IMG/VR virus record: IMGVR_UViG_3300027710_000011
Location: 62,001-126,000 of that record
Strand: one strand, 5' to 3'
DNA: 64,000 bases
Shown: one piece after another, positions 3,640-52,554 of the stretch
Numbering within the stretch: position 1 is the stretch's first letter
How the letters are laid out: each line of letters begins with the position of its first letter
Program-made: the position numbers and the translations under genes
Notes under the pieces: model-generated
Seen by the model: only the letters and a program-made list of their open reading frames with translations
Databases searched by the model: none
Told to the model about the DNA's origin: nothing

Positions 3640-4054
3640 AGAACGTATCCTCCGTAGACAGACCGAACTTCACCAGGTGAGCGCCGAGGTTGGTGCCGAA
3701 TTCTTCTCGCAGCTTGTTGCCAGCCGCAAGACTGTCTTTGTCATCAAAGAACTCGTGCAAACTACCGGCAAAATCCTCTTCTTCATCTGTGATGCGGAAG
3801 TCCACCGCGCCTTCGATGTTGATGTCCAGCATATCGTCGAGTCTAGGCATCATTGCCGCCATTGGAACGCCGACTTCAGCATTTCCATCATCGATGAGAA
3901 ACAGTACGCTGCGAACAGCCAAACGTACACGTTCCTCAGGCGACAAGTCTTCGCGGCTTGCACACTGCGTTGCGATTTCGTCGCAAGCAGCAGCAAACAT
4001 CAGAGCAGTTTCTTCAGCTGTGTAGAACAACTGCTGTTTGCTGTTTTCATTCAT
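3617..4054 (-). CDS. Hypothetical phage protein
   Basis: Acidic 145-aa ORF coupled to the AAA ATPase stop. Confidence 0.75.
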   Translation of the reverse strand: MNENSKQQLFYTAEETALMFAAACDEIATQCASREDLSPEERVRLAVRSVLFLIDDGNAEVGVPMAAMMPRLDDMLDINIEGAVDFRITDEEEDFAGSLHEFFDDKDSLAAGNKLREEFGTNLGAHLVKFGLSTEDTFYAENKET

Positions 4055-5403
4055 TACCTACGCGCTCCTGATTTGGTATTAAACATCACTTTTCGATCAT
4101 GGCCGAAAGGATAAGCGTCCATTGGATAATTCGCCGGATACACGTGAACTGGCGAATTATCACCTTGTTGTGCCCGTTGACGTTCCATTCGAATCTTACC
4201 TTCTTCGTCAGCAGCCTTATCGAATGGATCAGAGTCGACACTTTCATCGAACTTCTTACCCATTTCCTGCAGCTTACCGACGCGACCCGTTGATTGCCGC
4301 ATTGTCAACTCATAGGTGACGTCGTCTTTGACATACGTGTAAGAACGCATATCTTCAGACATTTTTGTGATCTCATCCTCAAACAAGGTAACCGCCGTCG
4401 TTACTTCTTTGACTTCCGGGTCCTCGCTACAGAAGAAGATCTTGACAACAGTACCAACGTCCGTGACACGCTCGGTCGCGGTTTTGTTCTCCACGCGGCC
4501 GTCAGGATAAGTGATCTTTGCGTGATAAAGAACCGTACCACGTAGTTTAGTGGCGCCGCCAAACATCAAGTCCATAGCACCCATTACGGTCAAGCCTGGT
4601 GTGTGGTTCATTTCGTCCACCATGGCCGCCATCATGTCGAAGTTCAAAGAGTCGTACAGAACAGATAGCTTTGCAAAATGCATCACTGTCTTTTCTTCTT
4701 TGCTCTTGATGTTGTCGCGAACATAACCAACCAAGACATCGAGGGGCAGCAACGAGTAGTACTTCGTGTAGCGAATCCGGCTCGGACGATCGAACAAGTA
4801 TTGAGAGATGCGATCGCTGTCGTTGCCAGCAATCACGATCAACTTCTTACCGCCGCCCACGCTGCCGTCAAAGATGCTGAGCAAGCGATCTTGCGCGGAA
4901 GTGTCGTTGTTACCACTGTTCTCGATTTGCTTGGAGTACTGCTTGTCGAACTCTTCGAACACGAACATCACGTCCTGCGTCAAGGAACGCACCACCATCT
5001 CCAACATCCCGGCCGGGTATTGCTGGCTGCAGTAGATCACAGGCATGTCCATCATGGTGGCTGTGCGTGCCATAGCCATGATAGTGGTGGTCTTGCCAGA
5101 GCCCTTCTGGCCAACCAGCATCACGCCCATGTTGCCTTTCAGGCGCTCGAACGTACGGAAGTAATGATCGACGTCCTTGAGGACATCACCATACAACTTC
5201 TCCGGCGGTTGCACGAAGGGGATCGGTTCCAGCACAGCGCCTTTTTCTGGATCAAAAGTCAGCTCGTAAGGAACAGCGCGCAACTGTTGCACGGCTTTGC
5301 CCGGAACAGCGCGGGTTGGAACAATGTTGCCATTGTCCATCTCACGAAAGATATACGTAACTGGCTGCGCTTGGTTAGAGCCGGCTTTGTTCGTCTGAGT
5401 CAT
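4054..5403 (-). CDS. AAA+ ATPase
   Basis: Walker A GQKGSGKT, Walker B FVFEEFD, sensor/Arg-finger region FDRPSRI. Confidence 0.85.
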   Translation of the reverse strand: MTQTNKAGSNQAQPVTYIFREMDNGNIVPTRAVPGKAVQQLRAVPYELTFDPEKGAVLEPIPFVQPPEKLYGDVLKDVDHYFRTFERLKGNMGVMLVGQKGSGKTTTIMAMARTATMMDMPVIYCSQQYPAGMLEMVVRSLTQDVMFVFEEFDKQYSKQIENSGNNDTSAQDRLLSIFDGSVGGGKKLIVIAGNDSDRISQYLFDRPSRIRYTKYYSLLPLDVLVGYVRDNIKSKEEKTVMHFAKLSVLYDSLNFDMMAAMVDEMNHTPGLTVMGAMDLMFGGATKLRGTVLYHAKITYPDGRVENKTATERVTDVGTVVKIFFCSEDPEVKEVTTAVTLFEDEITKMSEDMRSYTYVKDDVTYELTMRQSTGRVGKLQEMGKKFDESVDSDPFDKAADEEGKIRMERQRAQQGDNSPVHVYPANYPMDAYPFGHDRKVMFNTKSGARR

Positions 5404-5514
5404 CTTGTTTCCCTTTTGGTTGTGGAATAGGTCTAGTGAGAAAATGTGGTGGTTCAGCCACATGTAGAAATTCAAAAGCAGACAGAATCGAAACCCTGTC
5501 TGCCGGTTTATTGC

Positions 5515-7369: not shown

Positions 7370-8071
7370 TTATCCTTTAATTTGCTTGGTGTAGTTAATG
7401 TCGTGAACCTTGCGCATCAAACGAACGATGTCAAGCTTCGCTTTATGATTCTCCGCGATGTTGCTGGGAAATTCAGTTCTCTCAAACATACCCAAGGTTG
7501 CCAGCATGAACTGACCTTGAGAATAGTTTTTGAATTCGTTACCGGCTCGTCCGCGAATGTCGCAAAGACACGCGTTGATAAAGCTCATTGCGAGGCCGGC
7601 GTCGTCCAGCAGACGGGCATCTCGGATGAAGCTAAGGATGCGTGATGAACGCATCGAAAAGATCGAGTGCAACCTGATGTGTTGTTCACACATCAGCAAA
7701 GCCAATTCTCGGTCCATCCCTTCAATACCCAGGCGATCACAAACTGCTTTCACCAGAGGAATGCCGGTGCGCTCATGATCGTGGTGGCGAGGCAATATTT
7801 CAGCAGGCGTGATACCTTTGCCTAGATCATGCACGAGAACAGCAAATCGCTCCGAAGCAGTCAGCTTTAGGCGACGAGATTGTTCCATGCACAGTTCCAT
7901 GTGGATACCGACATCGATCTCAGGATGGTGTTCAGGACGCTGAGGAACGCCGTAGAGCGCATCAACTTCAGGTAAGTAGGACTTGAGCAGTCCGCTTGCG
8001 CGCTGATCTTGCAGCTCTTGTGCAGGGTTTTCACTTTTCAAGAGCTTCAGGAGATGTTCGTTGGTTGTCAT
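7370..8071 (-). CDS. Stand-alone HD phosphohydrolase homologous to the C-terminal domain of CCA-adding enzyme
   Basis: LPEVDALYGVPQ..HHPEIDVGIH and FAVLVHDLGKGITP..PRHHDH match the Cca HD domain; no DxD nucleotidyltransferase head. Confidence 0.85.
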   Translation of the reverse strand: MTTNEHLLKLLKSENPAQELQDQRASGLLKSYLPEVDALYGVPQRPEHHPEIDVGIHMELCMEQSRRLKLTASERFAVLVHDLGKGITPAEILPRHHDHERTGIPLVKAVCDRLGIEGMDRELALLMCEQHIRLHSIFSMRSSRILSFIRDARLLDDAGLAMSFINACLCDIRGRAGNEFKNYSQGQFMLATLGMFERTEFPSNIAENHKAKLDIVRLMRKVHDINYTKQIKG

Positions 8072-8122
8072 CTTATCCTCTATTACGTAATAAAGAGCAG
8101 ACCTAGGTCTGCTCTTTTATGT

Positions 8123-8602
8123 TCACCAACCAGACCAGGCTGGCTTGCCGGCGGAATTAAGCACCGTCACTTTTCGATGACGCAACCATTCCTTCATTTC
8201 AATCTTCTCAACTTTCCTGATGTTGCGCTGAATATCGTTCTTGGTTTTGAACTCATCAGCCAAGTTGTTAAAGCGATTGTTCACCGCTTCCCAACCATCT
8301 TCAGGTGCTTTGAAAATCGTGTACAGATACACCACAATGCCGAGCAAGTCTTCTCGTGTAGGCGAGACTGCACCATTCTCGATAACGATGGTGATGTTCT
8401 GGTCACGAGTTTGCACGCGATTGACTTTGAAGCTTTGCTCCAAAGCTGAAGCAAGTCCCATGTCAATCACATCGTCTCGTGACTTTGCAGCGTAGAGATA
8501 GTGATTGGATTCAGTCTGATCCCATTGCACTTCTACCCCAGTATGCTTAAAAGCAGGCTGGAGTACCTCATGCTCATATTTCGAGCTGTGATAAATGAGC
8601 AC
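8123..8602 (-). CDS. Hypothetical protein
   Basis: 159-aa ORF followed by a hairpin. Confidence 0.7.
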   Translation of the reverse strand: MLIYHSSKYEHEVLQPAFKHTGVEVQWDQTESNHYLYAAKSRDDVIDMGLASALEQSFKVNRVQTRDQNITIVIENGAVSPTREDLLGIVVYLYTIFKAPEDGWEAVNNRFNNLADEFKTKNDIQRNIRKVEKIEMKEWLRHRKVTVLNSAGKPAWSGW

Positions 8603-9012: not shown

Positions 9013-9876
9013 TCAGACCTTCCCCAAGGTCAAGCCCGTCTGGCCTTGGTATTTGCCCTTGCGATCAGCGTAGCTGGTCTTGCAGTCCTTGTTGCCGCGG
9101 AAGAAGATGAACTGAGCAATGCCTTCGTTCACGTAGACCTTCATCGGCAGGGACGTCGAGTTGGAGATCTCGATCACCACGTTGCCGTGGAAACCAGGTT
9201 CGATTGGTGTCACGTTGACAATGGCGCCAGCGCGAGCGTAGGTCGACTTGCCCACACAGATCACCATGACGTTGCGAGGGATCTTGAAGTACTCGGGCGT
9301 CACGCCGAGTACATAGCTGTTCGGAGGCAAGATGACGTACTCGCAGCCTTGCGCATCCGTGTGCACCTTGGCATCCACCAGGCAATCTTCACCACCGTTC
9401 TTGGGATCGATGATGCCGCCGTTGGCGTTGGTGAACAGACGGAACTTGTCGCTGACGCGCACGTCGTAGCCGAACGACGACAGACCGTAGCTGAGTACTT
9501 TGGCACCCTCGGATGTTTCGCGAATGCACTCGGTCTTGAAGTCCGAGATCATCGGCTCAAAGCGATTCTTGATCTGCTCGGTGACCGGCAGAGTGTAGAG
9601 TTGCTTCAAGCGCTCAGATTCAGCGTTGATGGCGTCAACAGCGTGCTGAGCCATCGGCCACGTGTTCAGGTTCGGATTGTTCGACCGGAAAGCCTGCAGA
9701 GCTGCGTCGTGACCTGCTTCGTCGTAGTACGTTTCGGGCAGAACGCACAGCTCTTGAATTTCAGTATCCGACAAGATGCCGGACGATGCGCCGATCATGA
9801 TTCCCATGGCGTGCTTGAGCTGATCTTCGCTCAGAACAGCAGCCAGGTCATTGGGGCGAGGAGATTGAATCTTCAT
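9013..9876 (-). CDS. dcd: dCTP deaminase
   Basis: [40 protein letters not shown] and [13 protein letters not shown] motifs. Confidence 0.93.
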
Positions 9877-9889
9877 GGTTTTGGTTCTC

Positions 9890-10462
9890 TTATTTGACAC
9901 GCTTCAGAAACGATGGTTGTGGTTTAGGCTCTGGCGCAGGAGTTTCTTGCGCAGCTGCCGAATCAGTCTTCTCGCCGACCAGCGTGTCGCCAGTAAGCGC
10001 TTCGTACATGCCTGGTGTAATGGCACCAATCAGCAGGGTTTGCGCCATGGTGCCGTAGCCGAACAACTCACCCAGCTTGACGCCAGCTGGACAAAAAGCC
10101 ATCAGCATCGCTGTGAACGGAACGAACACGCTGCGAGCCTGGCCGTTGAATCGCATCATGCAACCGATGCCTTGATCGCTGATGAAGAAGTTCTTGCAGG
10201 CGCTGTCTGCAAAATTCAAGACCAGCGTCTTGCATTGATAAGACGTCGTCATCAACTTATCGTCTTTCACGACAAGTACGGGATATTCTTCCGTCTGATG
10301 AGGAATGCCTTGTACACCTTCGACGCCAGGGAAGTTGTAGATGAACTTCACATGGACCGGATCGCTCATTGCGCGCATCCAGCCAAGCAGACCAGGAACG
10401 ATGAAAGGACGGCTATCAACAACGCCCTGCAGCTGCATGTAATCAAAATCTTTTCTGGTCAT
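9890..10462 (-). CDS. sspB: SspB-like ClpXP protease adaptor
   Basis: RPFIV..W, LVLNF...A, MRFNG...VFVP..A and C-terminal PSFLKRVK align with SspB and its ClpX-binding tail (LRVVK). Confidence 0.8.
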
Positions 10463-50132: not shown

Positions 50133-50207
50133 TGGTGCCGGATATCTGGATCGAACAGATGACCTACCGCTTACAAGGCGGTTGCTCTACCACTGAGCTA
50201 AGCCGGC
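50133..50207 (-). tRNA. tRNA-Thr(UGU)
   Basis: Full cloverleaf GCCGGCTTAGCTCAGTGGTAGAGC...CTTGTAA...TTCGATC...GGCACCA with encoded CCA. Confidence 0.95.
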
Positions 50208-52447: not shown

Positions 52448-52554
52448 TGGCGCTACTTGGAATCGAACCAAGCACCTGCCTTTCTGTCGTAGCTAACGCA
52501 GCAGCGTAATCGCAGGGACAGATCGGTTGCTCTAGCCATCTGAGCTATAGCGCC
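52448..52554 (-). ncRNA. tRNA-like RNA with expanded anticodon domain
   Basis: Perfect acceptor, D and T arms; 33 extra nt in the anticodon region. Confidence 0.75.

Follow-up and report, generated by a model that had tools for sequence, protein, structure and literature searches.

Introduction

The HD domain of the multifunctional CCA enzyme, Cca, is held to remove 2′,3′-cyclic phosphate from tRNA ends (PMC6961547), and a role for this domain in end repair within Cca has been proposed (PMC6961547; PMC10673834). According to the account of Yakunin 2004 given in PMC13262624, the HD domain of Escherichia coli Cca acts on 2′,3′-cyclic nucleoside monophosphates (2′,3′-cNMPs) and on 2′-nucleotides, and the enzyme is described there and in PMC6961547 as a Ni2+-dependent phosphatase, 2′,3′-cyclic phosphodiesterase and 2′-nucleotidase that is inhibited by tRNA. 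Phosphatase activity has also been reported for the Cca of Mycobacterium tuberculosis (PMC10673834). Here we describe a phage gene that encodes this HD region on its own, without the nucleotidyltransferase head. The gene lies at 7370–8071 on the minus strand of a 64,000-nucleotide stretch of DNA (the window), which corresponds to bases 62001–126000 of the 276,772-bp IMG/VR virus record IMGVR_UViG_3300027710_000011, rated complete by CheckV. Coordinates are those of the window unless the full record is named, and the 233-aa product, which starts with ATG and was delimited by open reading frame (ORF) and family scans, is referred to as P0001.

The 3′ end of tRNA is a known point of attack. Toxic small alarmone synthetases (toxSAS), including CapRel, pyrophosphorylate the CCA 3′ end of tRNA, and small alarmone hydrolases (SAH) of the HD family, one of them phage-borne, undo this pyrophosphorylation (10.1101/2021.04.30.441581; 10.1101/2024.07.05.602228). 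Cas12a3 cleaves tRNA tails, and according to the paper on this enzyme no viral countermeasures to such an attack are known (PMC12851939). In jumbo phages, full-length CCA enzymes have been recorded in some genomes, and HD-like domains have been listed as possible RNA-end phosphatases in a few (Iyer et al., PMC7824862, the latter in section 3.4.9). Our literature searches returned no description of a headless family derived from Cca.

Domain content and fold of P0001

All motifs of the HD part of multifunctional Cca are present in P0001. HHPEIDVGIH (residues 48–57), HDLGKG (81–86) and PRHHDHE (94–100) represent the HPE..G.H, HDLGK and P.H..HE motifs, and the H...H and D..GR motifs are found as well. 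The H...HD...D metal-binding set consists of H57, H81-D82, H131, H135 and D171. The Pfam HD model (PF01966) matched at 27.2 bits against a cut-off of 22, which places the protein in the HD superfamily, and the Pfam scan found no HD_4 (PF13328) or HD-GYP signature. The NCBIfam model for the multifunctional CCA addition/repair protein, NF008137, matched P0001 with an E value of 3.8e-48 over profile positions 183–385 of 409 only, and the score of 164.3 bits, compared with an equivalog cut-off of 451 bits, sets P0001 apart from full-length Cca. PHROG 2244 (tRNA nucleotidyltransferase) matched in the same partial manner, over positions 181–386 of 392 only. A sequence-only reading of this DNA had described the gene as a stand-alone Cca HD region; the motifs that it quoted are all in the protein, and the profile matches bear the description out, far beyond chance. 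BLASTP aligned residues 11–189 of P0001 without gaps to residues 185–363 of E. coli K-12 Cca at 36% identity. In this alignment H81-D82 fell on H255-D256 of the E. coli enzyme, which is reportedly its catalytic HD pair (Yakunin et al. 2004).

The absence of the nucleotidyltransferase head, also claimed in that reading, extends to the whole genome. A six-frame search of the entire 276,772-bp record with PF01743 gave no match, and a custom head hidden Markov model built from 44 full-length homologues gave no match at E ≤ 10 among all genome ORFs of at least 50 aa. P0001 is the only HD-domain protein in the whole genome. As judged from its sequence, it has neither the head nor most of the neck and so cannot add CCA. 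What it retains of a class-II CCA enzyme is the last part of the neck helix, the HD “body” and the helical tail.

The AlphaFold2 (AF2) model of P0001 is all-helical, with a pLDDT of 96.2. The closest solved fold was that of the class-II tRNA nucleotidyltransferase 3wfo_A, residues 221–448 (Z 17.3, rmsd 2.7 Å over 182 residues). P0001 could be superposed on the solved class-II enzymes through its helical body and tail. Further matches were poly(A) polymerase (PAP) 3aql (Z 11.3), the CCA enzymes 9kma, 1ou5 and 1miv, and 3h37, whereas generic HD enzymes reached Z values of 8–9, below the class-II nucleotidyltransferases. Foldseek TMq values of P0001 against class-II enzyme structures were 0.61–0.68. 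The ESM Atlas model of the protein had a TM score of 0.91 to a cluster named “Multifunctional CCA protein” (408 aa). The structural check that had been proposed together with the sequence-only reading thus points to the body and tail of a class-II nucleotidyltransferase. A comparison of the P0001 sequence with PDB chains gave no match.

Phylogeny and conservation of the headless proteins

A word-based protein search with P0001 yielded 1751 relatives. Among the best 120 of these, 58 were headless proteins of 221–255 aa, which outscored full-length Cca. A tree with 155 rows was built from the region that they share (IQ-TREE quick mode, LG+G4); in it, 62 headless proteins formed a single clade (SH-aLRT 98) beside proteobacterial full-length Cca, and P0001 fell within a seven-row subclade of jumbo phages (SH-aLRT 99). 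The single, well-supported clade indicates that the headless family was founded by one old loss of the head. Some short headless rows are interspersed with full-length sequences and probably represent fragments. The family is not covered by any curated Pfam or NCBIfam model, and the few members that carry an NCBI label are called “HD domain-containing protein”. A protein of the same name on the Pseudomonas megaplasmid pMPPla107 (459 aa, 26% identity) was considered and excluded from the family.

The matches in a scan of IMG/VR were almost all full-length phage Cca, and those without a head came from three loci. One of them, L029, represents a separate, later head loss within a viral Cca clade, and an HNH gene abuts it; another (L009) groups beside the headless clade, and the third (L018) was left off the tree. 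In a scan of species genomes, all 80 loci among the matches listed were full-length Cca, a result that is uninformative on how rare chromosomal headless copies are. Full-length cca was also seen on several plasmids, for example NZ_CP035936.1 (Acinetobacter cumulans plasmid p1_060092, locus L113), and some of the records listed as plasmids are chromosome-sized. The plasmid copies indicate that extra CCA enzymes on mobile elements are not confined to phages.

Across the alignment of the 58 headless homologues, 28 positions were invariant, among them H49, P50, E51, G55, H57, H81, D82, L83, G84, K85, T88, P94, H96, H99, H131, H135, D171, G174 and R175. The active site is intact: the His and Asp residues that make up the HD site (H49, H57, H81, D82, H96, H99, H131, H135 and D171 in P0001) were all invariant in the 58 headless proteins and in 57 full-length homologues, and this includes the whole metal-binding set. 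Positions conserved only in the full-length proteins lie mainly in the N-terminal neck helix, with an additional Arg at about position 156. The missing conservation of the neck helix in the headless proteins is what loss of the head contact would lead one to expect. In the tail, Y183, Q185 and R/K212 are still conserved in the headless proteins.

In a 276,853-bp relative of the phage (L135), the orthologue is 95% identical to P0001 and occupies the same place. The dN/dS of the P0001 gene against this orthologue was 0.11, and the values for neighbouring genes ranged from 0.07 to 0.21. The position of the HD gene is kept in five related phage contigs, namely L135, L002, L046, L047 and one more. 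In the last four, where the HD protein is only ~50% identical, the kept order is a dCTP-deaminase-like (DCD) gene, an ORF of ~133 aa, in most cases an ORF of 159 aa, the HD gene and an ORF of ~181 aa. The HD gene is under purifying selection and is a working gene, not a remnant.

The phage and its RNA-repair gene content

Megablast and blastn searches against GenBank phages gave no nucleotide match and no close named relative. In the full record, a homologue of the phiKZ nuclear-shell protein gp54 is encoded at 199686–201734 on the minus strand (24% identity, 95% coverage, E 1e-27), and homologues of split multisubunit RNA polymerases lie at 182227–186386 and 198104–199594. A phiKZ homologue was also found for the DNA polymerase, and the helicase is closest to those of Xanthomonas, Klebsiella and Pseudomonas jumbo phages. 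Judged from this gene content, the phage is a distant, probably nucleus-forming, Chimalliviridae-like jumbo phage. It comes from a subsurface metagenome, and its relatives come from pond, sediment, freshwater and fish-gut samples. The chimallin homologue and the split RNA polymerases suggest that the phage DNA is probably shielded, in which case cytoplasmic RNA and tRNA would be the exposed targets.

No Rnl1/Rnl2-type ligase, RtcB or Thg1 was found in the phage genome with a set of models that included PF09414, PF09511 and PF01139, and no HD_4 (PF13328) or SAH protein was found in it. The sole AAA_33-like match in the genome was considered as a polynucleotide kinase and rejected, its P-loop, IAIEGVDGAGKST, being of the thymidylate-kinase type. 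The arrangement of a T4-type heal-and-seal system, in which an RNA ligase and a 5′ polynucleotide kinase are co-encoded, is absent from the phage genome. The sequence-only reading had drawn an analogy with T4 Pnk/Rnl and had suggested a look for an RNA ligase elsewhere in the genome; none turned up, and the analogy does not hold for this phage. With no ligase, RtcB or kinase in the genome, breaks in the anticodon loop would not be sealable by phage enzymes.

The same reading had appealed to an “unusual tRNA island”. ARAGORN found one tRNA in the whole genome, a tRNA-Thr (UGU) at 50133–50207 on the minus strand, and Rfam revealed a second, tRNA-like gene at 52448–52554 on the same strand (40.7 bits, gathering cut-off 29). 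The tRNA-like gene has normal acceptor, D and T arms; its 13-position anticodon arm is replaced by a 46-nt insert that folds as a long hairpin. Because these are the only two tRNA genes and both lie 42–45 kb from the HD gene, the island argument falls away. ARAGORN overlooked the tRNA-like gene unless introns were allowed; at default settings it then reported a tRNA-Arg with an intron of 520 nt, which is doubtful, and at a lowered threshold it made calls that were obviously false. Neither result was relied on.

Genomic settings of family members

We examined the context of family members in a small sample of loci, picked on the size of the contig and evaluated without statistics. Family members reside on jumbo phages that resemble Chimalliviridae, on megaplasmids of Variovorax and on elements of the conjugative type. 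On a 181-kb contig binned as Agitococcus (L005), the headless HD gene is closely preceded by genes for a CYTH protein and a DEDD exonuclease, and 5–7 kb downstream of it are genes for an RNA ligase (TIGR02306, E 3e-61) and a member of the Thg1 family. On two further contigs (L040 and L043), which look like a plasmid or integrative element from their gene content, the headless HD gene is flanked by genes for a HerA-like ATPase and an S49 peptidase, and genes for a DEDD exonuclease, Rad52, SSB and UvrD are nearby. A 53.7-kb JGI metagenome contig (L042) carries a type-IV coupling protein and, at L042:5709–8705, genes in the order HD-less Cca, 110-aa ORF, SpoT-hydrolase-like HD_4 protein and headless HD protein. 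The HD-less Cca, a protein of 353 aa, aligns with NF009812 over the full length and shares 57% identity with residues 1–201 of E. coli Cca. The arrangement resembles a CCA repair enzyme whose parts have become separate genes, beside a candidate tRNA-pyrophosphate/alarmone hydrolase.

The headless HD gene is also carried by ~800-kb Variovorax plasmids and a related contig, where its neighbours encode NUDIX, metallophosphoesterase, HD_4, NadR-like, NAD synthase, NADAR, MazG-like and AlkB proteins. At L029, the independent head loss, an RNA ligase and a DNA ligase are located ≤4 kb away. The recurrence of genes for RNA-end enzymes near headless Cca-HD genes suggests RNA- or tRNA-end repair as the function of the family. 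Apart from the analogy with T4, the sequence-only reading had offered end healing and nucleotide hydrolysis as two options; both are sensible, and the related loci favour the first.

Proposed function and alternatives

On the combined evidence, we tentatively favour, at slightly less than an even chance, the reading that P0001 is a trans-acting tRNA 3′-end phosphohydrolase. The protein would be an active, metal-dependent HD phosphohydrolase that descended from proteobacterial Cca by loss of the head. We infer its catalytic activity from the biochemistry of E. coli Cca, and with it tRNA as the substrate and a role in counter-defence. The retained helical body and tail would hold the acceptor and T arms of the tRNA, as they do in full-length class-II enzymes, and the protein would act in trans on acceptor ends, stripping a terminal 2′,3′-cyclic phosphate, a 2′- or 3′-phosphate or possibly a 3′-pyrophosphate. 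This would leave the tRNA fit for rebuilding of its end by the host CCA-adding enzyme or for charging by aminoacyl-tRNA synthetases during infection. P0001 would heal only, and no phage enzyme would be able to seal internal breaks. Because the phage has neither ligase nor kinase, useful repair would be limited to 3′ ends, above all the acceptor end of tRNA.

A broader proposal, which we consider rather unlikely, is that the headless Cca-HD proteins constitute a family of dedicated, trans-acting tRNA 3′-end “erasers” of giant mobile elements (nucleus-forming jumbo phages, megaplasmids and conjugative elements) and broadly counter immunity directed at the universal CCA end. Such erasers would remove blocking phosphates, among them the 2′,3′-cyclic phosphate that metal-independent tRNases leave when they cut the tail or acceptor, and the 3′-pyrophosphate added by toxSAS of the CapRel/FaRel2 type. 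The CCA end is the one feature of a tRNA that phage-encoded variant tRNAs cannot change.

Several observations weigh against an action of P0001 on tRNA ends. The phage lacks an RNA ligase, RtcB, Thg1, polynucleotide kinase, CCA head and SAH, and the immediate neighbours of the gene are unknowns; since this phage offers no RNA partners, support from context comes only from a handful of distant family loci. Proteobacterial hosts usually own a Cca HD domain, and the need for a second copy is unexplained. Judging by the title of a 2010 report by Rao et al., HD enzymes reportedly hydrolyse 2′,3′-cNMPs promiscuously. Net charge and conserved basic positions fail to separate the headless proteins from full-length HD regions, and RNA-repair genes are rarer in phiKZ-type phages (Iyer et al., PMC7824862).

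The main rival to a tRNA 3′-end phosphohydrolase is a phosphohydrolase of small nucleotides that would serve counter-defence or nucleotide recycling with no tRNA involved, acting on free 2′,3′-cNMPs and 2′-nucleotides or on a signalling or alarmone nucleotide such as cyclic oligonucleotides and (p)ppGpp/(pp)pApp. We regard this explanation, with these substrates, as doubtful but quite possible. The substrates reported for the HD domain of E. coli Cca, 2′,3′-cNMPs and 2′-nucleotides (Yakunin 2004, as cited in PMC13262624), are of this kind, and the promiscuity of HD enzymes and the Variovorax-type neighbourhood, with its NUDIX, metallophosphoesterase, HD_4, MazG-like, NadR-like, NAD synthase and NADAR genes, fit such an enzyme. 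In the phage itself, the HD gene is two genes away from the dCTP-deaminase-like gene and has no RNA partners. On the other hand, the family keeps a tail of ~50 residues and a neck fragment that a small-molecule enzyme would not obviously need, which is a mild argument and not a decisive one; the lack of an HD_4 or HD-GYP signature in Pfam, and the RNA-end enzymes in the other family contexts, point in the same direction and are not decisive either.

The proximity of the DCD gene, which is kept in all related jumbo-phage contigs, and further nucleotide-metabolism genes in the window, including one for the small subunit of ribonucleotide reductase, would fit a nucleotide-pool enzyme tied to the DCD gene, for instance a nucleotidase or a hydrolase related to dNTPs that supports the synthesis of phage DNA. 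We judge this improbable. Two to three unrelated small genes and a stem-loop separate the HD gene from the DCD gene, and in one relative an HNH gene, between the DCD gene and the 133-aa ORF, also lies in that interval. Outside this phage lineage, the family shows no linkage to DCD, and the sequence and fold of P0001 are Cca-like, not dNTPase-like.

Still less probable, in our estimate, is that P0001 does the healing within a heal-and-seal pathway of the T4 kind that mends anticodon-loop breaks, such as damage of the PrrC or RloC type. Headless Cca-HD genes do lie near RNA ligases at L005 and L029, and HD-like phosphatases have been placed in the RNA repair of a few jumbo phages (Iyer et al., PMC7824862), but the partners of such a pathway (an Rnl1/Rnl2-type ligase, RtcB, Thg1 or polynucleotide kinase) are missing from this phage genome, and a host RtcB would need the very 3′-phosphate that P0001 would remove (RtcB chemistry, PMC7824862). 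Finally, a decaying remnant of full-length phage Cca or a non-catalytic tRNA-binding protein is easy to imagine, full-length Cca being common in phages, but is very improbable and largely refuted by the dN/dS of 0.11, the invariance of all catalytic residues, the uniform lengths (231–255 aa) and aligned starts across a deep clade, the gene's own ribosome-binding site and the lack of any head fragment upstream.

Upstream region and neighbouring genes

By inspection of the sequence, a Shine-Dalgarno-like GAGGA is present at 8076–8080 on the minus strand, 4 nt 5′ of the ATG at 8071. A stem-loop with a 10-bp stem (AAAGAGCAGA / TCTGCTCTTT) and a 6-nt loop was identified in the same way at 8092–8117 on the minus strand, in the interval that follows the stop codon of the 159-aa upstream gene and precedes the HD gene. 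The element may act as a weak terminator or in RNA stability, and a scan for consensus terminators made no call at this position.

The 159-aa gene itself (8123–8602, minus strand), directly upstream of the HD gene, belongs to PHROG 13483, of unknown function. Four of the five related phage contigs carry it at 60–86% identity, and L002 lacks it. Its AF2 model (pLDDT 75) gave Z values of 5.7 and 4.8 with Tpt1-type RNA 2′-phosphotransferases and of about 4.5–4.8 with the A subunits of bacterial ADP-ribosyltransferase (ART) toxins, and a feature search of the Atlas returned an Arr-type cluster at 0.93. We considered this ORF as a partner with a Tpt1/Arr-like ADP-ribosyltransferase fold; the matches were all below threshold (best Z 5.7), and the assignment stays a lead. 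If the protein were a Tpt1-like 2′-phosphotransferase, an RNA-end-healing pair with the HD gene would fit.

The dCTP-deaminase-like gene at 9013–9900 on the minus strand, from which the HD gene is two genes away, matches Pfam DCD with an E value of 1.6e-28, and its product has an N-terminal extension of ~90–140 residues that lies outside the DCD models of Pfam and PHROG. The HNH-endonuclease gene inserted between DCD and the ~133-aa ORF belongs to the region L135:3541–4584. A 190-aa ORF at 9890–10462 on the minus strand has a sub-threshold match to SspB (Pfam E 8e-5, 23 bits against 27; PHROG 8945) and could encode a ClpXP-adaptor-like host-takeover protein. On the other side of the HD gene, an AAA-type ATPase of 449–473 aa, the start codon being uncertain, is encoded at 4054–5475 on the minus strand; it is 94% identical in L135 and ~26–30% identical to ATPases of many unrelated phages (Aeromonas, Salmonella 7-11 and Lactococcus).

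Comparison with known systems

The biochemistry of P0001 is predictable. What is new is the family, its spread on giant mobile elements and a possible role in counter-defence at the tRNA 3′ end. The headless proteins are cheap-to-test candidates for a countermeasure to immunity acting on tRNA 3′ ends, as exerted by CapRel and other toxSAS or by Cas12a3. They would also provide a natural experiment on the role of the Cca HD domain in vivo, which so far has only been inferred. If P0001 were a general nucleotide hydrolase, the finding would be ordinary.

T4 Pnkp/Rnl is a phage-encoded system in which 2′,3′-cyclic or 3′-phosphate is removed from damaged tRNA, which is the same kind of step as that proposed for P0001. 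T4 Pnkp, however, combines a phosphatase of the HAD type with a P-loop kinase in one fused protein and has a ligase as its partner, whereas P0001 has an HD fold and is encoded in a genome without kinase or ligase. The small alarmone hydrolases, such as PaSpo of Salmonella phage SSU5, ATfaRel and MESH1, resemble P0001 in being stand-alone proteins of the HD superfamily, some of them phage-encoded, and some remove the 3′-pyrophosphate added by toxSAS from the tRNA CCA end (10.1101/2021.04.30.441581; 10.1101/2024.07.05.602228). They are RelA/SpoT-type HD_4 proteins, whereas P0001 belongs to another HD family and does not match PF13328, and a shared function can only be hypothesised.

The full-length phage Cca proteins of PHROG 2244, found for example in Vequintavirinae and in Sinorhizobium phage phiM12, have HD regions that are 26–37% identical to that of P0001, but they are proteins of 410–426 aa with heads and branch outside the headless clade. 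The phiM12 match was considered as a split gene and proved to be an ordinary Cca of 412 aa overlapped by an antisense ORF. The E. coli-type multifunctional Cca differs from P0001 in having a head and neck, and P0001 is phage-encoded, belongs to a separate clade and has lost the residues conserved in the neck; the two proteins nevertheless share the same HD motifs and the same fold of body and tail.

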